NCBI RefSeq assembly: GCF_026571515.1
Contig: NW_026852073.1
Span: forward strand, 124,001 to 188,000
Length of the DNA stretch: 64,000 bases
Origin: Ruditapes philippinarum
Lineage: Eukaryota
Direction: 5' to 3'
The stretch's first letter is position 1. Each line of letters opens with the position of its first letter. The position numbers and the translations under genes were made by a program. The notes below the pieces were generated by a model, which saw only the letters and a program-made list of their open reading frames with translations, was not told the DNA's origin and did not search any database. This document shows, piece after piece, positions 33,040-63,423 of the stretch.

Positions 33040-36000
33040 TCAGCAAATAGTGTTACCAGTCGCATCTGAAATAAAATGGAGTTAACATTAATGCTTAATT
33101 TAAATGTTCAACAGAGATAAATAAATAAAACTAACATTTCAAAAAAGATGTACATAGATTTGATAATTAAATTGGGGATAATCTTAGAGTTTTGTTCATA
33201 TGCGGGGTTCTAGAGTGTTAAAATCATAAAATATATTTCTTTGTAGCAAGGACAATTTGTTTTTCTTTATAAATAACCACTTGGTCATACCAGTAGTAAA
33301 GGTAGATATATTTTAATAAACTTGGTCATTCATTGCTACGGAGAATGAGTTCGATTGTCTTGATTGCTTGATAATAGAAAAGTATAATCAGAGGAAGAAA
33401 AGGACATGTTTATGTCAAAATCAATTTCGCAGATCTACACGTATGTTCTTATCTAAAAATGGCTGTGGTTCATCAACAAATATTTCATGATTTCTTTTTT
33501 CAAACACCAAAACGTAAAAAGTTTAGATGCAAATATAAAACAAACAAACCTACATTAAATATCCGTAATTAATTCAATGAGGAATTCGACTTGTATCAGA
33601 GGAAATGACACACCATACCTTTTAAGACTAAACTAGTTTCATCTGCAGAATGTTTACCAGCGCCATCTGGAACACAGCGGTAAGTGCCGGCGTTGTCACA
33701 TTGCGTTGATGCTAAAACTAGCATCAGTTGACCACTGTTTCCGGTAATATAGCTTAATTCCGTTATTCTATTAAATCCGGTGTTAGTCTCTCCGTTCAGG
33801 AAGCTCGATATTATGGTACTGTTATCCTTGTAAATGACGATATCTGTCAAACCATCAAAGTCTTTAACTTTACAGATTAGGGTTACAGAATCTCCTATCT
33901 GTATTTGATCAACAAAGTTGTCAATGTATATGTCTGGAAATATATTTCAGAAAATGACACCTAGTGCTGATTGAACTCTTTATTTTCGTGTACTTATTCA
34001 ATCGAATAATAATTATAAATAAAATTACCTACCTTCTTACAGATAATCACAATGAGAGTAAAATTCCACAAAAGTAAAGACGCGCCCAAAGAAAGCCGCC
34101 CATGTACATGTATATACGCAACTTAAATAAATTGTTTCAACTATATAATTATGGTGATTACGTGTCAAGTAATAAAGTTTAAAAAATAATTTGATTACTG
34201 TTTGGGACAATTCAAGTTTGCAGTTAAAATTTATTCAATTATTATAAACTTGCTTTTTCAATATTTCTTTGATAATGTTATAAAAACACTTATATAACTA
34301 ACCTCTTCAATGTATTAAAGGGACTCCACTGAGGTTTTTTGACATGATGGGACTGAAAATATTATTCCAGATAATTCTACCATTTGTTGCAGGTTTAGAC
34401 CACAAACCTTTGTGCAAAATTTCAGATCATTCGCGCAGTTCGTTTTTTCCAGGATAATTATTCAACTTGTAAAAAATGACCCAAAATGAAAAGCGTTTAA
34501 ATACTTTTCACTCAAAACCGTAAAAATACGATTTTCAATTTATTTCTTAGTATATTTCTTAACTATTTTTGCATATATTTCTGTTTAAAGTGCCCCAGTT
34601 CATTTATGTAAGAAATTCAAATGTTATGTTTTTAGGCTTTTAAACCTCAGTGGAGTCCATTTAAGAAGCTTTTGTATAAATTTGTAACATAATCCTTTAA
34701 ATATACATGATCAATTTTTTATACGAAAACTGAAGCCACATATTATATAAGTCTTTAAATTCCTAGAATTACCTGTCACGGAACATCCGCCTATCGTTTT
34801 ACAAGGATAACACGTCGTCTCATGAAAGCAATTACCTTGCCCACAACCTGCCGGCACACCCGACACATCCCCGCTGTGGCACCCGACAAACATATTACAA
34901 TGATAGGGGTGTCTTAGGACTCCAGTATAGACCTGGTTTTGAGTGCAATAGTTTTCTAAAGAAAATTTAATATACAGGTAAATATAAACAAAGGGAATCA
35001 ACATTAAATAAATGCAATATCAACACCCTAACAGAACATCAAATTACTAAGGCACAGCGTAACGACACACGGCGGGGCACTGCAAAAGGAATTGGGCAAC
35101 GAAAGGGCATAAATGGACAGATGTAAAATAAAAATAATATAAATATCATAATAAGTTAAAATTAAGAAAAACAGAATCTCTAAAGAAAGTGCAACATGAC
35201 AAAATTGAAAATGTTGCAGGTTCGGTTTGAATAAGCCTGTTCACAGACGGTACTGGAAAGTGCAAGTTACCATCCACGCCCCCTAGCACCGGCATAAGCA
35301 GAACTCAAAGTTTAAGCCCTTATTACAGCATCTTTCTTCTTAAAAATATACTATACTCAAATTTGATATTACAAAATATGGATAATTGTTGCACAGTCTC
35401 TTTGTACATAAACAAGTAACATAATTATTTAGACTTCACATAAAGTATAACATTTTGTTTAAAATCCTACACACTATTGGTGGTCACAATATAAATATAT
35501 AGTGTCATTAAAAATGTTGCTGTGTCTATGGAAGTTACGTTCATTGAACGCCGCCTTTCCTTGTTTAACATATTTTAGGTAAAGGAACAACCCATACATA
35601 TTTTATTTATTTTTTTTAAACAAATTAGACATATTCATTTATAGATTTCAATAAATTTCTGTGATTCATATAGTTTACTCAGGGATGAGTATAATGCATC
35701 TTTAACATATTTTTTAGATCAGGGCTATCATGCTATCATGCATCTATCCATAAACTATAATCACTTGGAAATATATTCCAAACAACCAAACAATTAACTT
35801 TTAAATGTTTAATAGGGAAAAATATTAAATGTTCAAACCTGGGATAACCTCTATGACTTGATTAGAAGACTCGGCTGCCTTACCATCCATCAGAGCTTGT
35901 GACGGTTTAGATATACATTTCAAAAGTTTGTTGTGATATTTGGCCGTCGCAGTGTTTATTCGAAATTCAATGACTCTCCTAGTACTACATTGTCCATTGT

Positions 36001-39000
36001 TTTCTGTGATACTTGTTATTGAACCAATTTCGTTCTTGTCATATTCATTGTCTTTCTGTGATAGAAACACTGTAAAGTTTGAGCCCTCGAAGTTACTTTC
36101 AATTTCAAGATAACCTTTCGGTGCTCCTATTTCTCCAGTGCATTTGAAGTTTGCAACATATCCGTTCATACCATTATATATGATCTCCAGTGTTGGGATC
36201 CCAGGCTGTCCTACAAGATAAAGAAATATGGTATATATTTATCATACCTGGACACAGTGTTGTTGTTGTCGTTGTAGATTGTTTTTTTTTTTGGGGGGGG
36301 GGAGAGATTTTTTTCTTTTTCTTGCTTATTTACCCCTTATGAAAATTTTACGTATTATAGAGTACGCCTATCAAGTATATATTAGAAAACAAGCTGTACA
36401 GGTGAATATATTATTAAAGTAACGCCTGTTCCGTTAGGTACATTCGGAAACTCTTCTTAAGCTCTGGAGCGTACGAGGAACCTTTGACAGATACACGTTA
36501 CTTTTTTTGTGTTATATAAGGAAAGGCTGTTTTTGTTTTACAATGTTAAGATATGTCATTAATCTATTCAATAATATATAAATGCCTCTACATTATTTAA
36601 CAATTGGTAAGAAAACAAAACAAAATGTATATTAGTAATATTTAGAAACAAAAGATGAGCGAAATTTAGTTATTTCCCGCATACAAAACTCGCCATATTT
36701 TATCTTGATCTTTTCTTAAAGCTGCATGCCTCCATATCAGCTTACAATATATCAAGTAAATCAAACATGTTGAAGATCAAAGTAATAATTTACATTAATT
36801 TTGTTATGCGATTTATTAAACTGTTTTTCGAGTATTTGTCATTTTATATTTCGGCTGCATTATTAACGCAAAAATGTCTCTTTTTGGTAATTTACGTGGA
36901 TTGTAAGTGCAAGTGTTACTTTAAGTGTTCACTTATCTACATCGAGCTTTCAGATACATTTTTCTAATGTTTCACGAAAAATTAGCATGAATTTCATGAC
37001 ATGCTAAATTAAATTCAAACACCCTTGAATAATAATTGGAATGATTTACATTAATATCAAGCTTTTTGCCAGCATATCTTATCATTTGAAGGTTTGTGTT
37101 TTGAAAGAAACTTACTCTGGAACATGATGTCAGTAAGAATTCTGTATCCACGTGTCGTTATTTATCCGCACAGCAACTATATATTCTACTTCGCCAACAC
37201 TACACAAGCGTCGCTGCAGTTCACCGGTTCAAATGTCAGGTCAAAACTAACTGAGGTAGTTTGTATGTGTATTGGCATCACACGGACATGTTCACCAACA
37301 AAGAAATGTTCATCAGGTGTATCTATGTCGATTCCAGCAATAACTTCGCCACCATCTCTGCACATTCTGCGAACCTCTATCAAATTCCAGCCAGTAATTA
37401 AATCCAGTGTAACTGATATGGCGGCAGTTTCTCCCGATATCAAAAGCGGAAGATAATGTTGATATGCTGACTGTAATAAAAGAATAGAAAAAGTCCAACT
37501 TCTCAGCTCTGATTCCGGAAGAAACAAGCATATATAAATATCTTTCTTTTGTCCTCTATTTCTTAAAATATTATAAAAAATATCTGTTTAAAAAAACGTT
37601 TTAGAACTGTCCATCTTGAAATTAAATCAAAATACAAATTCAGAAACAATGTTGATATTTCATGCAATCCCTATTTCTACAGTTTATCTTTCAACTCAAT
37701 GTGTACAAAAAATAATTGTCATTTTTTTCACAGCTAAATAAATCAATATACCTATTGGTGACACGATATTTAGTTGTTCCTCTGGTGAAGATATTTCTGT
37801 TTCATCATGCATGAGAATAACACATCGTAAAAATGCCTCTTGCATGGAAATATCTGGTATCACTAATGACACGATACTTTCTTTTATCCGACAATTTTCA
37901 ACAAGTGAGTAATTTTTAATCGACGGGAGGATGGTAAAAGATGCGGCATCCTGTAAAATATGGAAAATAAGAATTCCTAAAGAAATCCAAAACTGCAATA
38001 TTGAAAATGTTGTAGGCTCGATTTTCATGGACGGCATTGTCAAGTGCAAACTACCGTCAACGACCCCTAGCACCGGCTTTAGAAGAATTCAACATAGAAA
38101 TGTTAAAATTTTGAATATAAACCTTCCGCATATGTGTCCATACGACGGTTATCATGGTGCCATTCCATGAAAAGCAGCGTAAGATCCCCAAATAATAGAA
38201 AGCGTTTGCCTTGAACGAGAAAACAATTAGCGAAACTAAATAAAATGGAATTTTGAAAGGGGGTCAGAGGTTATGAAGCCTTCATATCACAGAAAAGACG
38301 TCAAGAAGGCCAAAGATAAAAAAATTGCCACAGGCAATGTTATGTTGAAACATTTCAAAATTAAAACAATTTGCCAGTTTAAAACCAATTTTACAGTTTG
38401 TAACTCTTAACAAAGGAATTGAAACTATTTACACCTTTTTTTAAAGTTTTCTTAACTAAATAATGTAAATATACTTATTAATACTTTTTCAAACATTCTT
38501 AATTTAATATGTTTAGTTCAATTATGCTCATTTCTGACATGAAATTGTATAACCTATTCTAAATCAATTTCATGGCACTGAATCTATATATGGGTACAAT
38601 GCAATCAACGTTATGCCCAATAAAACTCTAATAACATTTTTAATTGAAATGTACAAGTATTAGAAAAAAAATGGCTAATATGTTAATCTTAAATAATGCC
38701 CTGACACAGTAAAATCATAAAGGTTGCATATCGTTTAACCGTACAGGCTATGGTTACTGTAAAACTTGATAAGCAAGGGCGACAAGGAAGGGTGGCATTC
38801 GATGAAACGCACCCCAAAACAGGAGAACCAGCAACAAACTATGAACAGACGCCAAATAGGTCAGGACAACTTTGTTAATAAATTATTCAGAATAGGAAAA
38901 TCATAATTGTAAACCATCCTTCACAGACCCCCTCCCCTGCACCGGTTTACACTATAATTCAACCTTTCAGTTAAATGTATCATACAAATAATATACCTTT

Positions 39001-42000
39001 ATCTAATCTGTATCACCAAGCACCAAGTGCCGTGTCATTATCACTTTTACCAAGTTCACCAGTACATGTTATAGCCGTTTTTCAATATTTTCCATATGGC
39101 ATACATGTTTCCGGTACGGTTATATTGGGAACACTGGATTTGGTATCTTAAAACAAATATGGTAAACAAATGTCAATTCATCTTGCAATTAAAAGCAATA
39201 CAGAAGCAATCGTAATGTGTTAGATATTAATAAGATAAAATAGTACGTGGAAGTCTTGGTTAACAGTGATAAGGTTAGTTTAATAATATTTTATAGCATA
39301 TAAAGATAAACATCAATTCATTTACATCAAAAATTACACACTTAACAAAAGGGTTGGGCCAAAAGGTTTTACAGCATTATCGTGGGCCCTTCCCTGTTTT
39401 TAAAGATCTTTGGCAACGGATGGTAAAAATGGTTACAAATTGGGTCAAAATGGAAATGATGCTGGCGTCCCAACACTGCAAAAAAAAAAAAAAATATTGC
39501 AAGACTCGGTTAGACGCTGTTAAATAGGCGGTCATGGTAAAAATTCAATGTGCCCGTCTATGCCCAAAAACTCATCGGTTTCAAGCAGAACTCCCAACAT
39601 TGAAATAAGAAATATTGCGTATAAAAAAGTATTTGTAAAGAAGTAATAAAGAACAAAGAAGATGAACTTTATACAAACCTGTTATATACACGGACGTAAT
39701 TCGTACTTTTGACTTTAACAGGCCGATGTATAATTCCCAAGGATGTTTCCACAAATATAGACGCCTGAATCATTGCAACGAACTTTGTCAACCTCGAAAA
39801 CGATTGCAACACCATCGTCCAAGCGCTCGGGTCTCGCGGTAAAAGTACTTGATTTGCTGAAGTTATTGACTTGAATTATTACCTTCTTGTTTGTGACTTC
39901 AAACAATGGCTCAATGGATGTACTTTGGGAAACCTGACCTGGCTAGAAAGTAGTGGATTGCCACTCTGATGAATTATGTACAACACATCTAAGAGAGACC
40001 GGATCAGAAACATTATAAATTGGCTCGACAGGATCAAAGTCAATGGTTCCTAAAATGAAAAGAAAAATCGACATTGTGATATTCGTGTTACATGTTCGCT
40101 TATAGCAAATTATATATACATTCACAGCGCAAACATTACATGTACGAGCCGATACAGGCAAAGTGGTTAAAATAGTTAGGCAAAGTTGAAGTCAACTGGT
40201 GCCATAAAAGTAAATCATTGAAACACTGGAAAGGAAAACTCAATGTGATGTTGAATGACAGACTTAAGAAACAATATCAAAATAATTAAAGAATTGAACC
40301 TGGTATTTCACATTCTGGACTCCCCTGCCACCTTCCATTCTGGCACGTTACACATCTATCGCTATTTTGGACAAATTCTAAACCAGCTTTACATTGCAAG
40401 CATAACGTCGTGGTTGTATACATCAGCTCGTCATTGGTCACCATGTCGTCTAACAGTGTGTAGTTTCCACAAGGATGTTCGCGACATTCAGATGCAGGGG
40501 TCCAGTTTCCATCTGCGAAACATGCTACCGTAGTTACGCTATCAACCACGTAAAAGCCGGGATTGCAGATGATATTTGCTTTAAACCCGAACGATTTTCC
40601 AGAACCATTTACGACGCCATTATCTATCTGCGGATACGGTCCACATACTATCGGCTTGCAAGATGGGAGTTTGCTCCAGACATCATTTTGGCAAGTTATA
40701 GTACTGCTGCCGTTCAGTACAAACCCTCGGTCACAGGTCACTTCTGCTTGACCTGATGCATGACTCTTAAACACTGCGTGTTTTACTTCGGGTAACCTTT
40801 CACAAGCTACAAAAGATTTTTTCACTTGAAATTAATAAAGAAGTAAATTTGCTAAAACGCTTCATTACAATATGAATAAAAATTATATCTTTTAGCGTCA
40901 TCGGATGTTTGTTGTTTATTGCCTTTAATCATTATTTCAAAAACTATTTCATCATACTTATTTCATAGAGATAGTGTCTTAAAACCAATTATTTTCAATA
41001 AAATTTAGCCAAAAACAATTCTGGGCAACGTTTGTAAAATTCACAAAACTGTTGTCATGACAATTATTATCAATGATCATTAAAACGTGCTAAAGTAACC
41101 AACAAACTCGGAATTATGCAATAAGACAACCATGTAAACTATCTTTGCCCACATGACGATTTTACTGTGTTAATCAGCATGACATTTTGAACTTAAAGGT
41201 CTATTATGCCTCAGAAACATTATCATTTTGTATTTCTGACAGCTTTTTTTATTTTTTGTGCCCTGCTATAGTTTCCAAACAATAACTCATTGCCGCCTTT
41301 GTTTCTGTTGTCTTCTGGCAATTACAGTACACTTAAGAGTCAAAATATTACTTTGTTTACATTTTGCTACTTTTATGACAAATAGCTTCATACAATCGTA
41401 CTCAGAGCTACCTACCTCAGTTAAAAAGTATCTTATATGCTCTAAAAGCATCATTTAAACCTTATATAACTCATGTTTGCCCTTTCTAAAGGAAAAGGGC
41501 AGCGGTGGCAAAGTGGTTAAGGTGTCTCCCTTTCAACCCAGATATCATGGGTTCGGGTCCTAATCGAGCCCTAATCGGGTGACGGCCATGTTTCTTCAAA
41601 TGACACCAGTGCTGGTTGGTTCCAGGAAGCGGACTCAAGTTGCAAGAACTTGTTTCGCAATCGAGCTTCAATAAATATGTTTAAACCAATCTAAAGAAGA
41701 AAATCTATTCGTTTTGAAACATACTGTGCCTTTAAACTGCCGCATTTCTGAAATGCACTTGTCAAGCTTCCACTTCTAGTACTACCAATTATATTATAAC
41801 TTTGGAGGATAGCAAGATGAAAATTTGAAATAACTAACTGTATGCTTAAGAAATAAGAAATAATATTATTTTGTCATTTGTTATAACTATAATAGCACAT
41901 TATGCCTCAGTAAAAAAATCAAAAAAAAATCCTTATTTATTTAGGACAAATATGATTTTATATATGTTTAGAGCATGTTAGATGCTTATGGCATGCAGAA

Positions 42001-44275
42001 AGTAACAATGAATGTATACAATATATCGCCATAAAAAGTTGCAAATGTAAAGAAAGTAGTATTTTGATTTCCATGCAAAATACTATACTATTTTTCAAAA
42101 ATCAACATAAGCAAAATTTGGTTCAGTTAATTGGCCGGTGTTGAAGGCCCATTATGCCTTGGAAATGCTTTTATTTTTATTATCCCCCGAGGGATATAGA
42201 AATAGTCTCCGTTCTTCCGTCCGTCCGTCCGTCCGTCCGTCCGACATTTTTGGCCCGAGCATATCTCAAAAAGTATTTGAGGTATAAACTTGAAACTTCA
42301 TAGGTGGATAGATCATATTGAGTAGGAGTGCAGTGCACAAGAATGAAAACTCTACCTGCATAATTTTTCAGTTATTGCCCTTTGTTATTTGTCAAATTTC
42401 CCTTTTGTCCAGAACATAACTCAAAAAGCCTGTGAGATATCAACGTGAAACTTCATAGGTGGATAGATCTTACTCAGGAAGTGTGCAGTGCACAAGAGTG
42501 ATAACTCTACCCTTCAAAATTTTTGAGTTATTGCCCTTTGTTATTTTTCATACTTAATTTTTCACCTGAGTGGAGCATATTAACTCAAAAAGTCTTTGAG
42601 ATGTCAACATGAAACTTCATAGGTGGATAGATCTTATTGAGGAGGAATGCTGAATTATAACTCTACCCTTTATCATTTTTGAGTTATTGCCCTTTGTTAT
42701 TTTTCATACAATTTGTCCGGAGCTTATCTCAAAAAATGTTAGAGGTATCAACTTGAAACAAAGTTACTTCATAGGTGGATAGATCTCATTAAGGAGGAGG
42801 GCAGCACACAAGAATGATAACCTACCCTGCATATTTTTTCAGTTATTGCCTTTTGTTATTTTCAGTCATCAGTATTCATATAGGTTTCAAATCTGTACTC
42901 ATTTCAGCCATCAGTTTTCATTACCAAAATACCTCTTGAAATTGAATTATTCTGCCCTACTACATATACATTCTTCTAATGAGTAAACACATTCGGCGGG
43001 GGATGGCCATGTTAACATGGCTCTTGTTTCTCTTTTTTATGTGTACTTTTATAGTATTCAAAAAGTTACTCATTTCTTTCCGTGGCATAATGTGCCTTTA
43101 AATATTTTGCAAATATAGCAGGACAACAAAAATTAGCGGGAAAAATGAAATAAGAATAAAATCATTTCGGGAACACTAAGGACATATCAAAGTAAAAGTA
43201 TATACATACGGTTAGGTGGATCATCTTTGACAAACACAAAATAAATAATAACGCCTGCAGCTATCAGAATTATAAGTACAAAGATCGTTGCAATAATACA
43301 TCTTTGTGGCGAGCATATATCATTCTTCTTTGTACTAGTACTATTTCGTGAATTTTGTACATGTGTAATTACGTTTGAATCTAAAATCTTATCGTATGTT
43401 GTGCTTGAACTTCTGGTTGAATCACTAAGATTGACTGGATCTTGTCCTAAGCTCACTTGTTGACTTCCACTTTGTAAATGATAAGAAACTATAGGAACTA
43501 GGCAACTGGCTGTACGTTCTTCAGTCCGCACATCTCTTTCACGTATAACTTTATTTATTTCTCGTACATCACGGTCTACTGTTTTTAATCTGATATGGCT
43601 TTCTGTGTGCGCATTACGGTCAACAGTTCCCGCTCTGGTTTTGTTTTCTGCATGCGCATTACGGTCCACAGGTCCCGTTCTGGTTTTGTTTTCTGCATGC
43701 GCATTACGGTCCACAGTTCCCGCTCTGGTTTTGTTTTCTGCATGCGCATTACGGTCCACAGTTCCCGATCTGGTATGCTTTTCTGCAAGCGCATTACGGT
43801 CCACAGTTCCCGATCTGGTATGCTTTTCTGCAAGCGCATTTCTATCCACTGTTCCCGTTCTGTTATAGTTTTCTGCACGTTTATTTCTGGTCACATTTCC
43901 CGTACTTGTATGGTTTTCTGCACGCGCATTCTGATCCACAGTTTTCGTACATGTATGGTTTTCTGCACGCTTATTACTGGCCACAGTTTCCGTAGAGGTA
44001 TGGTTATAATCAGTATTGGCATCTTGGTCTACTGTTTTATTGCTATCATGACTATTTAAAACTCCTACACGACCATCGACATAACTTGAAACAGTTCCGT
44101 TACTCACATCTGATTCCTTTGCGTATGAATACGGAGATTCTTGTGATAATAATTCAAGTTGAATGTACCCTTCTGTGACTATGAGTTCCTGTCCACTGTC
44201 ATGGATATTAACCCGATTGTCATATTCGGTGGAACGGTTAGTTTCAGCTTTTTTTCCAAGTCCATGGGTATCCAT
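33040..44275 (-). CDS. Type II membrane protein with 3 CCP/Sushi, Ig-like and chitin-binding (CBM14-like) domains; central exons disrupted (pseudogene or exon-skipped gene)
   Basis: Exons (- strand): 44275-43210 (tail + TM IIATIFVLIILIAAGVIIYFVFV), 40806-40300 (3 CCP, C..C..W..C), 40049-39679 (Ig, D-x-G-x-Y-x-C; stop + frameshift), 39146-38997 (stops), 37950-37752, 37470-~37117 (frameshifts), 36210-35839 (Ig-like), 34955-34773 (RHPYHCNMFVGC...CGQGNCF), 33933-33619 (Ig, DNAGTYRC), 33065-33040 (DATGNTIC*). GT-AG sites; AATAAA on - strand near 32900. Confidence 0.75.
34319..34660. mobile_element. MITE with TTAA TSD (Kolobok/piggyBac-type target)
   Basis: TTAA-AGGGACTCCACTGAGGTTT ... AAACCTCAGTGGAGTCCAT-TTAA (19-bp TIR, 1 mismatch). 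Confidence 0.85.
41497..41690 (+). mobile_element. tRNA-derived SINE (second family)
   Basis: gtggcaaagtggttaag A-box, gggttcgggtcc B-box, gacaccagtgctggttggttccaggaagcggactc core. Confidence 0.75.
42175..43028 (+). mobile_element. Helentron-associated non-autonomous element (HINE/pearl-like)
   Basis: Subterminal IR atcccccg/cgggggat, (GTCC)n microsatellite 42216-42244, four ~155-bp tandem cores (gaaacttcataggtggatagatc...gttattgccctttgttattt), 3' palindrome gccatgttaacatggc. Confidence 0.85.
43570..44035 (-). repeat. Coding 45-bp tandem repeat (15-aa unit RAGTVDRNAHAENKT)
   Basis: About ten units within ORF 43187-44275. Confidence 0.9.
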
Positions 44276-52000: not shown

Positions 52001-55000
52001 TATTTCTATGTAATTTATGATGTCATATATCCTTTCTATTCTAGGTAACTTATGGTGTTATTTATCCAGTAAGCTTACTTATGACATTAATTATCCAGCC
52101 AGTTTACTAATAGCGTCTGTTAGGTTGGGTTATTTATGACATTAATTATCCAGCCAGTTTACTTTTAGTATCTTATTATCATATCAATTTGTGATCTCTC
52201 ATAAGTAAAGTTGGAAAGACTCAATATAACCTTAAGCTGTGTTGGTGTGTCCTAAAAGTATATATATCTATACAGAATATAAACTTGTACAAAGCTTACT
52301 TGATCAACGTTATCACATTTTATCAGTTTTTTTGAAATTAGGATGAAACATTTAGATTTAAAGTCATCTTGGGATCATAGATAATTTTCAAAGTCAATAT
52401 CTGGTATTAAAAATACTTATTTATTGTGAGTATTTGTTAATATGTGGAAAGTCAGTGACAGACTCTGCGAGGACCGTAGCTCTATAAGATAGCATGTATG
52501 GCGTGTATGGCTTAATCAGAATCACATTAAAATCAATATAAAAAATATATGTGTCAGTCTACCATGTTTGAAAAAAGTCCTTAGTAAGCTGGGCGGGCTT
52601 GTGCTTGTTATGAAATTAAAGGGGCTTTCCGTGTCATAGGGAGCACCTACTTTCATATTATACATGTGCAAATCGTCGCTTTTAGTAACGATATATTTTT
52701 CATATTAGCCTAATAATTTTTTCATTCATTAACTTGCCTTGTAAAAAGGCTTAAAATTTATTGGGTTTGTTATCGCCCTACATTTGAGCGTATATTTCAG
52801 ATATTACTAGATTACCATTCTCCATACCTGCCTCGAGCAGATGACGATACCACGCCACTCGATCTTGCTGAAAACTACGAACACTCCGACTGTGTAACAG
52901 AAATAGGTATAACACTGTTTTAGATTCAATATGACATTTAAAGCAGCATGTCTCCAAATGCTTGCTGATTTTCATGAAAAATTTGAAAATTGATTTTAAA
53001 GTGTAAAATTGTGAAGTAACCATAAGGAAGCATTTTGCACATTATCAATGGCAATTACATCCCACGTTAATTACCAAAAAGAGGTCAAAATATGGAAAAA
53101 ATAGCACTTACTGTGATAGTAACGCAGTAGAAAAATATAGATATAAATACTGAAAAACCAGTTATTTAACACACATAACATGACAATAATTACTTGAAGC
53201 TTTAATATTTTACTTTTCCTAAAATCTTAGCACATTTTTCTCATGTTTGATTTTATTGAAATATTTTGGCTCATCTGGAGGCATGCAAGCTTAAACCCTA
53301 AAACCTGCTGAATTTCTATAATGGATTAGCCCTGCTTTGAATTTGGAACAGTCCATTCTGATGTTAAGGGATTTCAATATCAAAGTACAAAAATGAGCTA
53401 CAAACCAGAATTGTTGAACTGCACTGATGTAGTTAAATTATTAGTTATAACGATTTTTTTACAGGTTATATGACCCTATATAAATGGTTGTTTGGAAATA
53501 TAACCAGAGCTGCTAGGCAAGGCTTACATTGCAAACAACTATTTATATACAGCCATATAACATGTCGGGAATATTTATAACAAATTTATAATACAGCAAA
53601 CTTCCTTTTTTTTTTAAAAAAAAAAAGAGATTTCTTCTTAAATTAAGTTGCTGTGTATATAATGGAACTATTTGACTAATCAAAAGTGATCACCCACAAT
53701 GACTTATATTTCTGTGTTATTTGCTTTTTAGATCAATTTGAACAACCAAAAGTGATCACCCACAAGTATGATTGGTTTCATCCTGAGATAGATAGACCGG
53801 TAATATCTCTAATTTATTTATACTTGGCTAAATTTTAGGCTTAGACAAATATTAGTTCCAGTGAAAGGTTTGAAAAAGTAATGTTTTAGTTTCAGACCTT
53901 TATTTCTGTAATCCTAATAACATCATATTTACAATTTCTTTGGTTTTGTATGCTGATAATAGTATTTCAAAACTTGATTGAAATGATCAAATAAAGTTTG
54001 AAATACTAGCCTAAAGTGACATTATACTCATTGTATTGTTCCCAAGTCAAGCTGAATTGAATATATACGTGTTTAAAAAGATTTACTATTAAAATGGTCA
54101 TTTACTAATTATTGATAATTAAAAATATTAAGAATAAAATATAACAACTGCCCAAAATATAAAGACTGTCCCACTCTTTTTATCAATTGAACATTTATTA
54201 TACATTCTGAAAGGATGCATTCTGAAAGAATATTTGAGCAGCGTCATGACAAAACCAACATAGTGCGTTTGCGACCAGCATGAATCCAGACCAGCCTGCG
54301 CATCCAAGTAGTCTGATCAGGATCCATGCTGTTTGCTCACCAACTCTTTTACAGGAAGAGAAACTGATAGCGAACAGCATGGATCCTGATCAGACTGGGC
54401 GGATGTGCAGGCTGGTATGGATCCATGCTGGTCGAAAACGCACTATGTTGGTTTTGTCGTGACGCGGCTCATTTATAGAATTTCCTGTGTGTTATGAGGA
54501 TTATTGATTATGCACATGAATTAGACTATAAAATCGAAAACAATTATGGCGAAATTTGAAGTTATTTTGACTTGTGCACCCACCATTTACTCTTGGCTGG
54601 ACATAATGTTACTTTAAGGATAAAGTTGCCATTCCCTTGAAAAAGAAACAAAAATATCATTTGTTCTAAAACATTTTTTTTTTCTGGTGTGTAAAGGGTG
54701 TTTTTTTTCTGTGATTTTCAGGGAGCCCAAAAGTTGTTAGAGTTAAAAGGTCTGAGAGAAGGGCTGTTTCTTGTAAGAGGTAGCAAGAAAAACCTAGATT
54801 GGTATGTGCTTACGTTATGCCATGACCAAAAAGTGTTCAACTATGAAATCAAAACAAAGGTAAGCTATCTTTCACTTTTAATAGTGAACAGTGCACACAT
54901 TATGTAGTAGTCTAAATGGACTTGTTCATTTTGCAGTCTGGACAAAACTATTGATCATTTTTCAGGAGAAATATCCCAAATATGTACTGACCGAATAGTG

Positions 55001-58000
55001 AATAGTGCACACATTATCAGACAACACTGATGTACTGATCTGATCTGGGTTGGTACTGGTCACATGGGTAGAATTATTTAATGGTGATGATTAATTTCTT
55101 CATGACAATTCATCTTTCGGCATGGAGTCTGTAGTCATTTGACTCTCTCTACTGATAATAAACTGATGTAGAATTACTGATATGTTATCCAGGAAAGTGA
55201 GTTTGGTGAATCGACCACCGGGATCGGACCAAAAAATGCGTTTAAATCACCTTTAAAAAAAACAACAGAAAAAACAAATGGAAAACTAGTGTTTAAATGT
55301 GTTTTTTTTTTACATATTACAGAATTACAGAGATCGGCACATGTTCTTTATAGATGATGGACCATTTTATAAAAGTTTAGAACATCTTATACAGTACTAT
55401 AGTTACCATGCCAACGGTCTGCCATGTGCCTTAACAGTATCCGTAAATACAAGTAAGTATAGAGGAGTTGAAGTGCCATATTAGTATTTATTATATGGAG
55501 GGTTGACCACAAAATTGCAGTAAATTATATGAAATAAAGAAGGGCTAACAACAGTCTTGCAGTCAACCCTCGATATGGTTTTCAATGTGATATGAGCCGT
55601 CGGGTTAGCTCAATAGGTAAAGTGTTAGACTGTGAATCAGGTAACCCGGGTTCGATTCCCGGATTGTGCAGGTCATTTTCATTGTGATTGATAACGAAAT
55701 CGCACTGTACCTCTGCTCTGGCATGTACTGAAGTTTCAGTTCCTTGCCAAAGTGGATGCTACACTAATACTGGTAAACTGCTTGACAGCTTGTCCAGGAA
55801 CGATATGGTGGCTGAACTGTGCTCTGGTAAATTCAATGTGGATTACTTTTGTGATCCGAGATATAGAATGATATCAATGAGATATAAGTCATATCACATC
55901 ATTTGAAACTGAGTGAGATATAGAAGAAATTTTGTTCCCATTATAAACATTGAAACAAATAGAAAAGAAAAAAAAAGAATATCAGATATATAGCATCTCA
56001 AATGAGTTACCATATAATAAAAAAAGTTATTAAACAAGTTCAAAAAATTGTTGCAAAGCAAGTCTTTGGTGAGCTTTAGAACATTATCATGGAAATGTTA
56101 AATAGAATATTATTTTATATGACAATGAATGTGAGATTAATTTTTTTATCACATGACTAAATACATTGAAATTTTTAGATATTTTACCAGTGCTTTTCTA
56201 TATACATATTATATGAGTATAACACATACAATATAAGGAAATAAATGATGATTATAATACTTCGAAAACAAGCAATGTAATGAAATGATTTTTATGATGT
56301 CATGTCCTACAAATTCACATTCATGGAAATTCACCATGAAACCTTTACTGTAATGGTGTGACTTTAAAACCAACGGAACAATCTAACTTGTGTTACTAAA
56401 TATAGATTGTATTTGTTATCCAAATGTCTAAATAGTATCTCAGAACTTCATCGGGTATTTATTAATATGTGTGTGTTTGTTAATATGTGTATATTTGTTA
56501 CTATGTGTATATTTGAAACTATGTGTATATTTGAAACTTTGTGTAATTGTTTGTCTGGTTTGTGATTACAGCTAGAGAACTGGTACAAATATCAAAAGAC
56601 GATGAATACTTCAACTTGGTAGACACTTCAAACAGATACCCAAGTAAGTCTGTCTTAACTCTTAACCTCCTGAATTTGTATAATGGATTCATCATGCTTT
56701 AATTATGGAACAGTCCATTCTAAGCTTTAGGGCTTTTAATGTCCGAATATAAAATTGAGCTGCTAACTGGATAGAACCTAGATAGACTGCAAGGATGCGC
56801 AGGCTGGCCTTGCTATAATTATACTTGGCGGCAAGGGGCATCTGAGGCTTAGTGGTTAAACCACTTGCCCCTCAACGCTGTGGGCTCGAATCCTGACAGG
56901 GACTTTGGATTCTTTCATGTGAAGAAGCTATCCAGCCAGCTAACGGAATGTCAGTGATTCTACTCAGGTGCCCGTTTGTGCCTGAAAAAATGCAAGGAGG
57001 GGCACCTGAAGTCTTCCTCCACCATTAAAGCTGGAAGGACGCCATATGACCTATACTGTGGGACATAAAACCCAATCAAACAAACAAACAAAACTTGGCA
57101 GCAAAGATTTTTAGTCCCAGCAAAGTTAAGGTTATTTGTTTGTTTTAGCAAATCTTAGTTGACTTTGTTGTGCTTTGTTAAATCTTTAAGAATTATGAGC
57201 TAAAATTGAAATTTATATCATTGAAGTATATGTAACGCTTGAATTTATAATCAAGCAATAGACATTAATTCTGAGTGCATATTTGAGGAATAATGCATAT
57301 TTGAAGATTAATGCGGCATCTGTGGCCAAGTTGTTAAGGTTGTTGTTTTCAAACCACTTGCCCTTCACTGCTGTAGGTTCGAATCCCGCCAGGGACTTTG
57401 GATTATTTCATGAGAGAGAGCTATCCAGCTAGTTTACATAACATATGTGGTTTTACTCATAAAATAATGCACTTGAGTTCTTCCTCCATTAATGCGACAT
57501 AAAACCCAACCAAAAAGAAAAAAAGATGATAAATAATGCATGGTCTAAGTTATGAAAGGCAGTTAAGTGTAATCACAGAGGCATTTAGGAATGAGTGAAT
57601 AATTGCAATGAATTTGAATGATAAACCATAATATATAATAGGAAATTGGAATCTATATCCATGCTAACATGGTAATAGAAAAAGAAATTGATCATAGATT
57701 ATGTATGACTACATTGTGCACAGAGATAAATTTTCCTGATGCGTTATGGCTTATTGACATGCATCTGACATCATAGGGCATGAAAAACATTCCTTTCCTC
57801 ATTTTATGCATTACCAAGTTATAAGTCATCGGAATGACTGTGTAATAAGGAAATAATGTTGAGGGTGTGTAAAAATGTTAATTAATAACAATTTATTTTA
57901 TATGCAATATTGTAAGAAAGAGCACTTAAGTTTTAATAGTACTTGAAAAAAATTTTGCTTTATAAAATTGCTAATGATATCTTTTTAAAAGCTTTAATTT

Positions 58001-61000
58001 TTTATTTTTCTATGTATATTCAGAGAAACCTGAATTCTTATCTAATTATTGCATTTTTGTCTGTATTTTAGAATAATAATTTTAATCTGAGGATAACTCA
58101 TATGTTACTTTATTTGCTGTTGATTTCTTTTACAGCAAACGTATCACCAGCATTGCCACCACGACCCGAGTCTTTAGACATGACGTACACGGAAAGTGCC
58201 TCGGGCCCTGTGTCAAACAACGCCCATCAACATGCCCCACCAATGCCCCCGTCTCCAACACCACCCATGTCTAGTCCTCCGCCACCACCAAACCATGTAT
58301 GTATATAAGTACATAAGTAAGGTTCTATGTTTGTATTCATTTATAGGGCATGCCTCATGCTGAGTAAAATAAATCAGAATTGTCATAAGAATAATAAACA
58401 TGTTTATAGTTTAAGAAATGAATGATTAAGTATACCCAATCCAGGTGAAAAGGTGTTGTCAAAAATATGACAGAATTTACTATTTTTATCACTTAAATAT
58501 AACCTTTGATATTAATGGCCACTGATCACAGACAGCAAATAACCAATGTTTGCAGCCATTGATACAAAAATTTTCATAGAGTGTTGTGGGCAAGGTACCA
58601 GTATTTAGAAGTGAACTTACTAACAAGTTTGAATGTATCTGACTTAATGGAAATAGAGGATATTGAATGAGTGTAGGGTTTATAGAGTGAGGGATGTTGC
58701 ATTTTTTTATTATCGCTCATGTACAGACTCAATGAAACTGAGTCTGCAATTTTCATGTAATTTTGTTGAGATTAGTTTAGTTTATACAAATTTATTTTAG
58801 TTAGATTGTGTTGGAAGCTTTAAGCTTATTGAAACAGTCTCGAATCCGTTCCTGGAACCAACCAGTACTTAGCAATAAATGTAAAGTTTCTTGCTCAAGG
58901 AAACAACAGCCTGCCCCTGACTGGTCCGATGCTTTAACCACTTGGCCACGCCGCCATTCATATGTTGAGATTAATGCTTCCGAGGAATCACACTTTTTCC
59001 AGATTTTAATACAAAATTTATTAAACGAGTTGAATAAAATTATGTTATACAAATGTTTAGTCAAAATATATGTACAGCTGTGCAATATTCTTTTTAAGGA
59101 GTTGCAGAAGTGACATGGGTTTGTGATAAAATGCTATAATGAACTGATTCACTCATTAACTTCTGTGAGTAATATATGTGAGCCGCGTCACGACAAAACC
59201 AACATAGAGCATTTGCGACCAGCATGGATCCAGATCAGCCTGCGCATCCGCACAGTCTGATCACATCTCCATGCTGTTTGCTATCAGTTTCTCTACTTGT
59301 AATAGGGTTGGTGAGTGAACAGCATGGATCCTGATCAGACTCCTCGGATGCGCAGGCTGGTCTGGATCCATGCTTGTCGCAAAAGCACTATGTTGGTTTT
59401 GTTGTTACGTGGCTCATGTATAATTTTATCATGATTTTTCTTCAACAGCCACCACCTATCAGCAAACAGCAAAGTATTACAAAACAACCGGAGGTTTCAT
59501 TACGACAGATTGAAAGAAAACTCCTCTCATTAGGTAACTTACTTTAAAATAGTTGTTAGGGCTACCTTACTCAACATGAACAGACTCAATTAAACTGAGC
59601 CTGCAACATTTTCAATTTTACCGTTTTGGACTTTCTTCAGGGATACTTATTTTCTCTATTTTACTTTATATTTCATCTGGTTTTTTTTCTCAACTAAGAT
59701 TTAAGTTTCTCAATATTTATCATATGTCCAAGATAAGAACGGTTTACAGTTAAAAAGAGTCATTTTTCATTGACATGCCTATAGTGTATGCTGACATTAG
59801 CGAGCTGTAATGCTATGTTTGTAAATAACGCAAATGACATCACATCATATTGTTATTACACTAGAGTAATATTGCTTTTACCGAATTTCTTTATTACACT
59901 CCTGACCTGTGGTTTATGTGAAAAGGATTTTTATAATTTGTGAAATTTGATAGATACCGGATATATTCTACTTAAAATTGAGAATTTTTGGGTTATATTT
60001 TCATATGTGCTTCATAGTCTTGAAAATAATTCCAAATTTTGACTTCCTTGTTAAAAATACTCCATATTCACTGAAAACAAACAAAATTTAATACCCTTGT
60101 CATACTCATTAAAATTTGACTGTTTGTAATACACAATGTTGTCTTTTTTTGTGCAGGTAAAGAGATAGGGCAAGGTGAGTTCGGGTCTGTAGTGAAAGGT
60201 GTTTACAAGAAGAAAGGGACGGGAAGGGGGAAGACAGAGAAAACAGACGTAGCTATAAAATTGTTCCATAAAACAGCCATCAATAACCAGGAGGATTTTC
60301 TGAAGGAGGCTAGGACCATGCAACAATTAGAACACCCTTGTATTGTCAACTTTATTGGCATCGCAGAATCAGAAAACCATGAACTTATGCTGGTTCGTGA
60401 TTTTTACATTTTGAACGATATTTGCACCCTGATGGTTGACCGACCCTGGTGTTGCTTTGAAGTCTGTAACACCCGAGGTCAGCTGAAATAATTTTTTCTG
60501 TTTCCACCATATGACCTATACTGTGTTGGTGGACCGTAAAACCAAACAAACAATAACCTAGCACCCTCACGCAGTCAATATGTCAGTTATATTTAGTAAA
60601 CACACCTTTAAATTATTTTGTGTTGATTGTTCATTCCACCAATCCTATTTCATCTATTGCACAGGTATTCTTAATTAAACAGTCATGAGTATACTTGTAG
60701 TTTTATCTTAGTTATAACGATGCATTTCAGTCATATGATCAATTTTTATGTTTTTCCTTTTTTAGAATAAAATGAAAAATTTAGAGGAATCCTAAGGAGC
60801 CTCTGTGGTGGAGTGGAATCACTTGCTCCTCACCCATGTAGGTTCAAATTGAAAATTGTGTAGTTTTTTTTTATGTAAGGAAGTTATTCAGCTACCTTAC
60901 TTAGGTGCCCCCCCCCCCCCCCCCCCCCCCGTCATTCATGCCAGAAGTAATGCGCATAGGTATTTGTGGTCTTCATCTCCAGAAAACTAGAATAGTTGTT

Positions 61001-63423
61001 ATAGTACCTTAAAGCTGCATGTCTCCAGATGAGCCAAAATATTTCAAGAAAGTCAAACTTGAGAAAAATGAAAAATATATACTAATATTTTAAGAAAAGT
61101 AAAAAGATTCAAAATTCAAGAAAAAATTTGCATTCTATGTGCGATAAATGTCTGATTTTGTAGTATTAATTGCCATACTTTCTACTGCGTGGGAAGCCCA
61201 GTTAGGGCTATTTTTGTACATTTTGACCTCTTTTTTTTTTTGGTAAATTAGGTGGATTGACTTTTGAAAGTGCTGTTTTCAATGTGTAAATTACTTGTTT
61301 TGTTCACTTCACAATATTTTACTTTTAAATACATTTTCACATTGTCATGAAAATTATCATGGATCTGGAGGCATGCTGCTTTAACAGGATTAGTGTGGCT
61401 TAAAATCCACTTATTGATAATCAGTTCAATAAAAAACAATCGCTTTTATTTTGCTAAAAATCCAACAAATACAAAAAAAGATTTTTATCCTTATTACTTT
61501 ATGCTTATTTTGATAGTTTGATCTGATATTAAATTTAATGTATACTATAGGTAGAGGAATATATATCAATGGGGTCCATGCTTGATTATCTGATAGACCA
61601 TCGAGACAATATACGGAAGGTTGACCTATATTTGTGGGCAGCCCAGATCGCCCTCGGTATGATGTATCTAGAGAAGATGAAGATGGTACACCGAGATTTG
61701 GCCGCGCGTAATATATTACTGCAGAGTAAAGAAAAGGTATTTTATATAAAAATCATATATTTATTTGAATGTATTATACAGAAATATGTCAGAAATCGTT
61801 ATTTTCTTCATCAGACTACTACCCTATTAGTCTCAGTGAAAGAGAAATTTCGGCATATTTTGAGAAGTAAAGATGATTTTTGTGCATCGTAAATTTCCTT
61901 TTAAAAGCTAGGTTTTAGTTAAAACAAGATACAAAAGTATCCACTTAAGCAATGATAGCTAGGCAAAAAGCCTTTTTTTTAAAAAGTCAGTTTCAAGGGC
62001 TTTATAAACTTTTTTTTGCCTGTTCGAGTTTTCAAAAAAATAAATAATAATGTATGTTACATAAAATAAATAAATAGAGAAAGAGATAATTATAAGGTTA
62101 TTGAAATTCCTATTTATTTATTTATTTATTTATTTTTATTTATTTTTTTGCTGAGAACCAGAAATAAAACTTTATTTGGACCCTATTGTGTATAGAGACA
62201 TGTATGTATTTAACAAAAACATTGGCTCTCATTTCATGTTTGTTTCATAATTATTTTCCTTGTGTATAATGGATGAGTTTTAATGTTCAAGTATTACTTT
62301 AAGTATATAATAAGGAAACTTTCTTTTTATGAAATTATTATAAGCTATATTTGGTACATGTGTACTATATTTGATACAGAGGAAATTTGATTTCTTTTTT
62401 AAGTGGCTGAAACCAGGCAGATAGTTTACATAGATAGGCAAATTTAATGATTTATGCTCAAAGGTTTCAATTGCATGTGAAACAAAGAAGAAAATGCAAA
62501 AAAATTGCAATAAGCCTTCAAAATAAGATGTAACATATGTTTTATTACTACACTTCAAAGAAGAATTCCTCTAACAAAAAGTACAGTAACAAAAATAAGT
62601 CATTCACTTAGTAGAAATATGGTGATAAATACATGTCCTGCAAAATTATTCATTCATTACATACAACATAACATGTTGATTATTTCTTGAATTGTGAATA
62701 TTTTTACCATCCTTACAATTTTAGTACATTTTAAATTTTTTCTCAATGTTGATTTTTTTTAAATATTTTGGTTTCATCTGGAGGCATGTAGCTTTAACCC
62801 AGTTGTTAAGCAGAGATAAGGAAAATTTTGCTTTATTTGACATATTTCGGATGAGTATAATATTTCTTGATTGCACATGATTTAGTTTTATGTGTAGAAT
62901 AGCTTTCTAATACTTTACTGTCAAAAAAATTTATAAGAATCAGCATGAATCAAGAAGTACATTGTACACAGCTTTAAGGGATTTATATAAAACAAAATTC
63001 ACTAAGGCCAAACAAAAGAAAAGTTCTGTTTCTTATCTCCCAAGCTACCTTATTTTGTTCAGGCCACTTAAGCGTTTTCAGATCCTTTCATATTGGAACA
63101 GTATCCAGCTAGCATAATAGAATGTCAGTGGTTCTAATCAGTTGCAAGTTTGAGCCTGAAATAATACACAGAGGGGCACCTAAGTACTTCCTCTACAAGT
63201 AAAGCTTGAAAGTAGCCATATGACCTATACTGTGTTGCTGTGACGTAAACCCTAACCAATAAAAAAAAAAATTTGGCTTTTTTGTATATTTTGTATAATG
63301 GTATACATCTTTACATCTGTATATTTTTCAGGCAAAGATAAGTGATTTTGGTTTATCAAGAGCTGTAGGATCAAACAGTGATTACTACAAGGCTACTACA
63401 GGGGGAAGATGGCCAATTAAATG
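46087..63423 (+). CDS. shark: Shark/HTK16-type non-receptor tyrosine kinase (SH2-ankyrin repeats-SH2-Pro-rich-kinase), 3'-partial
   Basis: Exons 46087-46300, 48290-48457, 49390-49533, 50096-50167, 50998-51113, 51482-51622, 52801-52906, 53732-53799, 54722-54859, 55323-55452, 56572-56643, 58136-58296, 59449-59533, 60157-60392, 61551-61736, 63332-63423 splice in frame. Motifs: WYHGRI..FLVRES (SH2), ankyrin TALH/TPLH/IPIH/TPLD, WFHPEI..FLVRGS (SH2), [34 protein letters not shown] (Syk-family activation loop). Confidence 0.93.
46428..47296 (+). mobile_element. Internally deleted hAT-like DNA transposon with transposase N-terminal remnant
   Basis: 17-bp TIR C(C/A)GGGCTCGAATTTAAC, 5-bp TSD ACTCA (46423-46427, 47297-47301); ORF 46713-47003 with W..L.Y..FCADC zinc-finger-like motif. 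Confidence 0.75.
47350..48223. mobile_element. pogo/Tc1-mariner-like non-autonomous element
   Basis: CAGTGGAGCCTCGCTAATCCGAAC ... GTTTGGACTAGACATGTTCCACTG-TA imperfect TIRs with subterminal taatccg repeats. Confidence 0.6.
49161..49377. mobile_element. Palindromic MITE (ATGAGCCGCG...CGCGGCTCAT)
   Basis: Long terminal inverted arms; multiple copies in window. Confidence 0.85.
50198..50272 (+). mobile_element. Fragment of the ATGAGCCGCG MITE family
   Basis: tgagctgcgccatgacaaaagcaacatagtgcgtttgtgaccagcat matches the left arm. Confidence 0.7.
50460..50690 (+). mobile_element. tRNA-derived SINE (first family)
   Basis: ctcgaatcctgccaggg..atgtgaggaagct..caggtgccc..cttcctccacca..actgtgtc..aaacaa tail. 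Confidence 0.8.
51154..51490 (+). repeat. ~55-bp minisatellite containing copies of the shark exon 6 acceptor
   Basis: taaattatctccctttatt..tttcagagatgtt x~6; the last unit is the real acceptor. Confidence 0.85.
51623..52065 (+). repeat. ~30-bp minisatellite (ccttcctaggtaacttatgatgtcatatat)
   Basis: About 14 tandem units beginning at the exon 6 donor. Confidence 0.9.
52942..53290 (-). mobile_element. TTAA-flanked MITE (AGC(A/T)GCATG family)
   Basis: Inverted copy of 61013-61380; partial copies near 36720 and 62790. Confidence 0.75.
54234..54472. mobile_element. Palindromic MITE (ATGAGCCGCG family), full length
   Basis: ~95-nt inverted arms around a short core; matches other copies. Confidence 0.85.
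55597..55850 (+). mobile_element. tRNA-headed SINE (third family)
   Basis: tagctcaatagg A-box and gggttcgattccc B-box; acceptor stem does not close; continues into a non-tRNA body. Confidence 0.55.
56835..57092 (+). mobile_element. tRNA-derived SINE nested within a TTAA-type MITE (~56660-57133)
   Basis: TSD ACTTGGC(G/A)GCAA at 56823-56834 and 57093-57104; (CAAA)n tail. Confidence 0.85.
57313..57520 (+). mobile_element. tRNA-derived SINE (first family), internally deleted
   Basis: gtggccaagttgttaagg..ggttcgaatcccgccagggactttggatt..gctatccagctag. Confidence 0.8.
58800..58955 (-). mobile_element. SINE (second family)
   Basis: cctggaaccaaccagtact core and ttaaccacttggccac head on the opposite strand. 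Confidence 0.65.
59178..59417. mobile_element. Palindromic MITE (ATGAGCCGCG family), full length, core inverted relative to 49161
   Basis: Inverted arms; core ctatcagtttctctacttgtaatagggt is the reverse complement of the core at ~49250. Confidence 0.85.
61013..61380 (+). mobile_element. TTAA-flanked MITE
   Basis: TTAA-AGCTGCATGTCTCCAGAT ... ATCTGGAGGCATGCTGCT-TTAA. Confidence 0.85.
63098..63270 (+). mobile_element. 5'-truncated SINE (first family)
   Basis: tatccagctagc..gtggttcta..ggggcacct..atatgacctatactgtgttg..gacgtaaaccc, A tail. Confidence 0.75.

Follow-up and report, generated by a model that had tools for sequence, protein, structure and literature searches.

Bivalve immune repertoires are very large and lineage-specific, and few of their membrane receptors have been tied to intracellular signalling. 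Among the closest described systems, the Syk-coupled receptors Dectin-1, CLEC-2 and CLEC9A are type II proteins with a C-type lectin-like domain and a tail of a few dozen residues, near the N-terminus of which lies a G-Y-x-x-L sequence. The hemi-immunoreceptor tyrosine-based activation motif (hemITAM) is YxxL after acidic residues at positions -2, -3 and -4, which are needed for its phosphorylation (PMC3576117). In oyster, a single YxxL-type motif in each of CgCLec-HTM and CgCLec-TM1 has been reported to bind an SH2 domain of Syk (CgSyk) (review PMC13027682). In Drosophila, the glial and phagocytic system of Draper (CED-1/MEGF10) and Shark joins a type I EGF-repeat protein, which carries a canonical immunoreceptor tyrosine-based activation motif (ITAM; YxxI-x11-YxxL), to a kinase of the domain order SH2-ankyrin (ANK)-SH2. 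Tail tyrosines may also follow the YxxPhi rule of sorting signals, as in the type II transferrin receptor, which uses YTRF. Here we describe a type II membrane receptor gene that lies on the minus strand, head-to-head with a Shark gene on the plus strand, in the clam Ruditapes philippinarum. The window, which is the whole stretch of 64,000 nucleotides (nt) that was analysed, corresponds to C560:124001-188000, part of a contig of the 1.41-Gb assembly.

Based on the analysis of this locus, we consider it fairly probable that the protein is a receptor that binds a ligand and has tail tyrosines which, once phosphorylated, are recognized by SH2 proteins, or which serve in YxxPhi sorting, or both. 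As it joins a complement-like and immunoglobulin (Ig) ectodomain to selectively conserved tail tyrosines, it is a tractable candidate for the study of phosphotyrosine signalling in haemocytes of clams. Our literature searches found no paper on this receptor family or on clam Shark.

When we compared the clam receptor with the systems above, both similarities and differences were apparent. Like Dectin-1, CLEC-2 and CLEC9A, it has the type II orientation and a G-Y-x-x-L sequence with an acidic residue at -2 near the N-terminus of its tail. Unlike them, it contains no C-type lectin domain (Pfam finds only Sushi and Ig in the receptor) and no triacidic patch from -2 to -4, its tail is 323 amino acids (aa) long, about 290 residues separate its motif from the membrane, the leucine at +3 is not conserved, and several further tyrosines are. 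It is also, like CgCLec-HTM and CgCLec-TM1, a bivalve transmembrane protein with a YxxL-type motif, but these are C-type lectins coupled to Syk, whereas the clam ectodomain consists of Sushi, Ig-like and Cys-rich modules and its motif is not conserved. The clam locus resembles the Draper system in combining an invertebrate surface receptor, a two-tyrosine module and an SH2-ANK-SH2 kinase as a potential reader, although the second half of the clam module is YS[YF]A. Finally, the transferrin and asialoglycoprotein receptors share with it the type II topology and Y-x-x-[F/L] in the N-terminal cytoplasmic tail, while their ectodomains are unrelated to that of the clam receptor, whose motif lies far from the membrane and is accompanied by extra conserved tyrosine motifs.

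Gene structure, topology and transcription of the receptor

The receptor ATG at 44275 and the Shark ATG at 46087 are divergent and separated by 1,811 nt, in agreement with the 1.8 kb given in an earlier reading of this DNA (hereafter the original prediction). The first receptor exon holds an open reading frame (ORF) at 43187-44275 on the minus strand, whose ATG follows an in-frame TAA at a distance of four codons. Over the tail exon, identity to the NCBI protein XP_060593992.1 of Ruditapes philippinarum is 100%. The N-terminus is hydrophilic, and therefore the protein has no signal peptide. The single transmembrane (TM) segment, IIATIFVLIILIAAGVIIYFVFV at 43297-43229, is a 23-aa hydrophobic run flanked by KK/R on its N-terminal side and by KDD on its C-terminal side.

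We mapped RNA data to 40320-46319, namely the contigs of two public runs and two raw RNA-seq runs. RNA contigs skip exactly 43209-40807, a phase 1 GT..AG intron of 2,403 nt on the minus strand, and join exon 1 in frame to the exon that encodes three Sushi (complement control protein, CCP) domains. Since this splice join is present in the RNA contigs of two runs, the receptor is transcribed and its type II topology is sound. The original prediction of a type II protein without signal peptide, with a tail of about 325 aa and one TM segment, is thus upheld with a tail of 323 aa, and an untranscribed receptor gene, named there as a refuting outcome, is contradicted by the spliced RNA of two runs. 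The many N-x-T sequons of the tail prompted us to consider an N-out topology as well. We rejected it because Sushi and Ig domains have to face the outside of the cell and because the TM segment is flanked by charges in accordance with the positive-inside rule.

From its N-terminus, the receptor consists of the tail (residues 1 to about 323), the TM segment, three Sushi domains, about four or five Ig-like modules and an eight-cysteine module, and it ends with an Ig domain followed by a short C-terminal piece. The Sushi domains were detected by Pfam in three stretches (71.8 bits against a cut-off of 20.7), and the final Ig domain was likewise recognized by Pfam (Table 1). In an AlphaFold2 (AF2) model that covers the C-terminal 284 aa, the Ig-like domains are confident. 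The module that precedes the Cys-rich one forms a beta-sandwich with a predicted local distance difference test (pLDDT) value of about 80-89 and matches two-Ig structures in Foldseek, while the Cys-rich module itself remains below 50. For the Cys-rich module, Pfam CBM_14 gave no match to the window copy and sub-threshold matches in four of five relatives (best E=1e-3), with E=0.021 for P0069. With a profile of the module, PDB 8in3 was matched at E=3e-4 and a chitin-binding protein of squid beak at E=0.54. Based on these matches, we tentatively describe the module as resembling CBM14, the peritrophin-A chitin-binding domain with its 6-Cys fold. Of the ectodomain originally predicted, the three CCP domains and the Ig domain were recovered by Pfam, while the CBM14-like module is weak and stays below threshold.

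Between the two Ruditapes haplotypes (see below), the allelic ratio of nonsynonymous to synonymous substitution rates (dN/dS) was about 1.4 for the tail, 0.77 for the Sushi exon and 0.13-0.18 for the C-terminal Ig exons. The Sushi exon also varies to an unusual degree between individuals, and one RNA contig showed 32 differences in 487 nt of this exon (40320-40806) versus none in 223 nt of exon 1 (43210-43432).

Selective conservation of tyrosines in the receptor tail

An exhaustive HMMER search with the protein of LOC132736301 (P0003), the intact allele of the receptor, revealed a clear ortholog in Mercenaria mercenaria, LOC123556107 (P0004), which is 1371 aa long, 49-58% identical and has a triplicated Sushi block. 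Type II paralogs of like layout are Mercenaria LOC123556105, LOC128558398 and two transcript-derived proteins. Ruditapes has a paralog of the LOC123556105 type 105 kb off on the contig of the receptor, and further ones on contigs C1084, C12314, C11998 and C12026. In the homolog searches, the tail exon alone returned only the clam's own protein within the query length window. The whole LOC132736301 protein, with Sushi words crowding the candidates, returned only the Mercenaria ortholog, as did the family-specific C-terminal region. Giant SVEP1-like proteins of Mya and Mactra (3,000-3,800 residues) match the Sushi triplet and the Ig-like block at about 27-31% identity. The multi-tyrosine tail and signal anchor were seen in those venerid members whose tails were read, and the comparison with the giants covers the two matching blocks. 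We place the receptor in a small clustered family that has so far been encountered in the venerids Ruditapes and Mercenaria only, a clade-restricted family with a conserved multi-tyrosine tail whose members are annotated only as 'uncharacterized protein'.

The Mercenaria ortholog carries three near-identical blocks of three Sushi domains (nine in all) and a tail of only 160 aa. On the receptor's own contig, paralogs are located at C560:45385-52814 and C560:73924-75043, forming a local family cluster around the C1q array and Shark.

We aligned the tails by anchoring them on the invariant YS[YF]A, and the comparison covers one full-length ortholog species (Mercenaria mercenaria) together with the paralogs. 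Between the Ruditapes and Mercenaria ortholog tails, all seven aligned tyrosines are kept, versus 46 of the 135 other residues (34%; Fisher p=8e-4). The conserved set comprises YDN, Y-phi-x-[L/F], YS[YF]A (10-12 residues further on in the closest three members), a further S/T-Y and TxYxxI. These tyrosine motifs are identical in both Ruditapes haplotypes in spite of the high dN/dS of the tail, which is long and for the most part unconstrained, as would be expected of a disordered tail bearing short linear motifs. The selective conservation of the tyrosines makes SH2-type signalling plausible.

The tandem repeat that lengthens the tail (Table 1) is rich in N-x-T sequons, has an equal copy number in both haplotypes and is absent from the Mercenaria ortholog.

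The EGYIQL motif, which the original prediction had placed at 44156-44173, is confirmed codon by codon (GAA GGG TAC ATT CAA CTT, 44173-44156 on the minus strand), and its tyrosine is Y37. When we compared this site across the family, it reads TEGYIQL in Ruditapes, QSVYFEF in the Mercenaria ortholog and DSYFGS, YPYVTF, RGYLTF and DLYVSF in paralogs. The tyrosine and the hydrophobic residue at +1 persist in the relatives, but the surrounding context does not, and leucine at +3 occurs only in Ruditapes, with F or S in five of the six lineages. The GYxxL motif, whose lack of conservation in orthologs was among the refuting outcomes named by the original prediction, is replaced by SVYFEF in the ortholog and by YVSF, YVTF, YLTF and YFGS in the paralogs. 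YIQL is the only YxxL in the tail, with a second site, YxxI, at Y294. In shuffles of the tail composition, YxxL appeared in 34%, YxxPhi in 80% and TxYxx[VI] in 12%, and therefore the YxxL motif alone is not beyond chance.

The residues preceding Y37 are V(-4), T(-3), E(-2) and G(-1), so that only -2 is acidic, and the corresponding S-Q-S-V-Y of the Mercenaria ortholog has no acidic residue. We rejected EGYIQL as a Dectin-1-type hemITAM because the triacidic patch is absent, the leucine at +3 is not conserved and the receptor has no C-type lectin domain, and the Dectin-1-like receptor that had originally been proposed is not supported on the same grounds. From its sequence, EGYIQL reads as the Ruditapes version of a Y-phi-x-Phi site and not as a hemITAM.

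Candidate readers of the tail

If the receptor acts in the way that we consider fairly probable, its ectodomain would bind a ligand, ligand binding would lead to phosphorylation of the tail tyrosine motifs, and these motifs would attract SH2 proteins, act through the machinery of YxxPhi sorting, or do both, with Shark as one candidate reader. If the tail proves to be a binding site for Shark, Syk, SHP or Grb2-type proteins, the logic of ITAMs and of immunoreceptor tyrosine-based inhibitory motifs (ITIMs) would extend to a new receptor architecture. Several points weigh against this model. First, gene structure, topology, transcription, motif conservation and adjacency are observed, whereas phosphorylation, the binding partner and the ligand are predicted. 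Second, a single full-length ortholog species stands behind the motif comparison. Third, in a paralog subfamily pair, tyrosines are kept in 6 of 11 cases versus 67 of 212 for other residues, which is a trend only (p=0.11). Fourth, Y-phi-x-Phi also fits a purely endocytic signal. Finally, the indels that break the frame in exons 3-6, if real, would leave a truncated allele in the window.

The endocytic alternative takes Y-phi-x-[L/F] as a YxxPhi sorting signal for AP-2 mu2, in which case the protein would be an endocytic or scavenger receptor and not a kinase-coupled sensor. YIQL, YFEF, YVSF, YVTF and YLTF all fit such a signal, F is the commonest residue at +3, and the type II topology is consistent with it. 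We nevertheless regard it as rather unlikely, since one paralog has YFGS without Phi, YxxPhi is found in most shuffles, sorting signals usually lie nearer to the membrane, and the conservation of YDN, YS[YF]A and TxYxxI would be left unexplained.

A further alternative places the main site at the membrane-proximal TxYxxI, about 30 residues from the TM segment, where it would recruit an SHP-type phosphatase and make the protein an inhibitory or switch receptor. At the sequence level, the consensus of ITIMs or of immunoreceptor tyrosine-based switch motifs (ITSMs), (S/I/V/L)xYxx(I/V/L) or TxYxx(V/I), is matched by TTYDKI and TTYDQI in Ruditapes, by TTYDRI in the Mercenaria ortholog and, as a canonical ITIM, by ISYAVI in a Mercenaria paralog. 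This alternative is unlikely in our view, because a match of this kind has a chance probability of P=0.12, the more distant paralogs give no clear alignment at this site and phosphatase recruitment is read from the motif itself. The endocytic and the inhibitory alternatives are not mutually exclusive with one another or with a tail read by SH2 proteins.

We then considered whether the receptor gene is intact. NCBI splits the locus into LOC132748402 (559 aa, which stops at 39943) and LOC132748363 (284 aa), and the window sequence itself carries stops and frameshifts, as would be expected if the window allele were genuinely truncated or a pseudogene with only the tail, the TM segment and three Sushi domains of the 559-aa model left. 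The two halves differ by 39 and 54 in their NCBI LOC and accession numbers, so that we did not take such numbers as a guide to position. The intact 1176-aa allele LOC132736301 is on the 50-kb contig C1743, which is colinear with 20.6-49.3 kb of the window at about 90% nucleotide identity and carries the receptor, Shark exons 1-3 and C1q genes. When the LOC132736301 protein was mapped on the window, the stops and frameshifts were confined to exons 3-6. In the patch of about 3 kb at 37.0-40.06 kb, the comparison of the window with C1743 gives 58 indels of one or two bases, most of them insertions copying the adjacent base, and hardly any substitutions, whereas outside the patch the haplotypes differ by many substitutions and by 0-6 small indels per 500 nt. 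Since the patch is indel-rich and substitution-poor, the breaks in exons 3-6 read as a probable assembly artefact. The patch is probably unpolished long-read sequence within an intact receptor gene, and a genuinely truncated allele seems decidedly unlikely. What is corrected here is likely a mis-annotation, in which one gene was apparently split in two by an unpolished assembly patch.

The colinearity of C1743 also identifies it as a haplotig of the same locus, and therefore it is no independent case of receptor-Shark adjacency. The kinase itself is as originally predicted: reading the domain order and kinase motifs exon by exon, we found an SH2 domain (FLVRES), at least three ANK repeats, a second SH2 domain (FLVRGS), a proline-rich linker and a tyrosine kinase domain with HRDLAARN and DFG…SDYYKA. 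The phosphotyrosine-binding arginines are intact in both SH2 domains. Two SH2 domains, Ank and PK_Tyr in Pfam together with tandem activation-loop tyrosines place the protein in the Shark class. The kinase exon matches EGFR and ErbB kinases in PDB, which is not diagnostic of subfamily. Short Shark exons searched in the clam genome match only the locus itself, indicating a single copy, in a word-based first look with short queries that speaks to Shark and not to a separate canonical Syk. Because Shark is single copy, the other four to five paralog loci have no Shark neighbour of their own. The last two Shark exons lie 0.1-1.3 kb past the window end.

The original prediction also suggested that the receptor and the kinase may form a co-regulated pair. 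The outermost RNA contig ends, which are lower bounds of transcript extent, are 44408 for the receptor and 46052 (also 46077) for Shark, leaving a gap of up to 1,643 nt, while the criterion that we used for a bidirectional promoter is start sites less than about 1 kb apart. The haplotypes show 10 mismatches in 994 aligned bases (about 1%) over 44000-44999, which covers the start of exon 1 and about 600 nt upstream, and 6 in 337 (about 2%) over 46000-46336, which covers Shark exon 1. Over 45000-45499, there are 45 mismatches and 11 large indels in 396 aligned bases, and C1743 has an extra 0.7 kb. The spacer holds a repeat at 45320-45919. Two separately conserved blocks with a repeat-bearing, indel-rich spacer between them look more like a promoter for each gene than like a bidirectional one common to both, and co-regulation is not supported. 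Both genes are thinly covered in the two raw RNA-seq runs (0.3-3x at 4-5% sampling), and their presence at low depth throughout the four runs tells little about co-regulation. So far, Shark is linked to the receptor by position only.

The introns differ by about 9-11% between the haplotypes, versus about 1% at 44000-44999. Over the repeat at 45320-45919 and over 41320-43119 in intron 1, RNA depth exceeds that of the exons by a factor of hundreds to thousands, in both orientations and with many loose ends. Both stretches are most likely expressed transposon-derived repeats.

We finally weighed direct docking of Shark, in which EGYIQL alone, or with YSYA as an ITAM-like pair, would bind the tandem SH2 domains of Shark and the head-to-head layout would co-regulate the two genes. 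The type II topology, the G-Y-x-x-L sequence with acidic -2 and the selectively conserved tail tyrosines are consistent with such docking, both Shark SH2 domains keep FLVR(E/G)S, and transcripts of the two genes occur together in each of the four runs. The spacing between Y37 and Y49 is 12 in Ruditapes, and that in the two closest Mercenaria relatives is 10 and 12, within the ITAM spacing of 10-12. Binding of Syk has also been reported for bivalve receptors that have a single YxxL (review PMC13027682). Nevertheless, the triacidic patch required by a hemITAM is absent (PMC3576117), +3 is F or S in most lineages, the motif is remote from the membrane and YxxL arises by chance in about a third of shuffles. 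The canonical ITAM, YxxL/I-x6-12-YxxL/I, is matched by YIQL-x8-YSYA in spacing but not in its second half, which lacks L/I at +3 and has A (or E) there in all members. The other paralog loci lack an adjacent Shark, a divergent spacer with a repeat puts up to about 1.64 kb between the 5' ends, and the only cases of adjacency are the two haplotypes of a single locus. Taken together, these points make docking of Shark in this form quite unlikely. A non-canonical ITAM-like module, Yxx[L/F]-x6-8-YS[YF]A with 10-12 spacing, that docks the tandem SH2 domains of Shark is improbable, although, if true, receptor and kinase would make up a unit of invertebrate innate immunity that is linked in the genome and belongs to neither the lectin nor the Draper family. 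The partner to be expected for Shark by default is, we assume, the clam's own Draper/MEGF10-like protein. The adjacency of Shark offers a cheap first hypothesis on what reads the receptor tail.

Feature coordinates and the C1q array

The positions of the receptor, its tail motifs, the spacer, Shark and the C1q genes are listed in Table 1.

Table 1. Features of the receptor-Shark locus and the neighbouring C1q array, in window coordinates.
Feature	Position	Strand	Basis
Receptor exon 1: 5' untranslated region of at least 133 nt, ATG 44275, tail aa 1 to ~323, TM, donor GT 43209-43208	43210-44408	-	ORF; RNA contigs to 44408; XP_060593992.1 100%
Y18-D-N (pYxN, Grb2-type consensus), kept in Mercenaria ortholog and most paralogs	44216-44224	-	Alignment
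EGYIQL (Y37), Ruditapes form of family-wide Y-phi-x-[L/F/S] site	44156-44173	-	Sequence; alignment anchored on YS[YF]A
YSYA (Y49, Y51), best-conserved motif among the family tails, 12 residues past Y37	44120-44131	-	YS[YF]A in 12 of 12 family tails examined
45-nt tandem repeat, 9.3 copies, giving 15-aa repeats (TVDRNAHAENKTRxG), lengthens tail	43589-44005	-	Tandem Repeats Finder; pairwise alignment
TTYDKI (Y294), membrane-proximal TxYxxI, ITSM/ITIM-like	43385-43402	-	Haplotig TTYDQI, Mercenaria ortholog TTYDRI, Mercenaria paralog ISYAVI
Single TM segment, signal anchor, N-terminus inside	43229-43297	-	Hydrophobicity, flanking charges
Receptor exon 2: three Sushi/CCP, both ends in phase 1	40300-40806	-	Pfam 6.3e-20; RNA splice joint; junction sequences
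Receptor exons 3-6: about three Ig-like modules; frame broken by 1-2 nt indels, haplotig copy intact	37130-40049	-	tblastn of LOC132736301 protein (P0003)
Receptor exon 7: Ig-like module	35840-36208	-	98% identical to LOC132736301 (P0003); AF2, Foldseek
Receptor exon 8: eight-cysteine module, tentatively CBM14-like	34774-34956	-	Profile matches; Pfam sub-threshold in relatives
Receptor exon 9: C-terminal Ig domain	33620-33934	-	Pfam ig 1.9e-7
Receptor last exon (…ATGNTIC and stop)	33040-33065	-	Matches end of P0002/P0003
Spacer between outermost RNA contig ends, up to 1,643 nt	44409-46051		RNA depth, contig pieces
Shark exon 1: ATG 46087, start of N-terminal SH2, donor GT 46301	46052-46300	+	Spliced RNA contigs from 46052 and 46077; sequence
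Shark N-terminal SH2 remainder (FLVRES) and first ankyrin repeat, approximate zone	48319-49556	+	Pfam SH2 3.5e-6; ORF translations
Shark ankyrin-repeat exons	50985-51620	+	Pfam Ank 1.2e-11; second ANK exon by motif
Shark C-terminal SH2 (FLVRGS), two exons	54719-55484	+	Pfam SH2 1.1e-7; single copy in genome
Shark proline-rich linker exon, approximate	58102-58308	+	ORF translation
Shark tyrosine-kinase exons; activation loop 63332-63423	60192-63423	+	Pfam PK_Tyr_Ser-Thr 2e-11, 1.9e-16; motif scans
Three coiled-coil and C1q genes	1832-4183, 16762-19180, 21552-23372	+	ORFs; Pfam C1q 6.6e-18; tblastn
Relic of a fourth C1q domain, disrupted by stops and a frameshift	31120-31426	+	tblastn

The C1q domain-containing (C1qDC) proteins encoded beside the receptor had been proposed in the original prediction as possible opsonins read by its CCP modules. 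We rejected them as ligands of these modules, since adjacency is all that speaks for the proposal and the genome is rich in C1q, with at least 1,233 candidate C1q domains. A relic of a coiled-coil exon lies at 9255-9872 and, together with the broken C1q domain at 31120-31426, represents remnants of further C1qDC gene copies.

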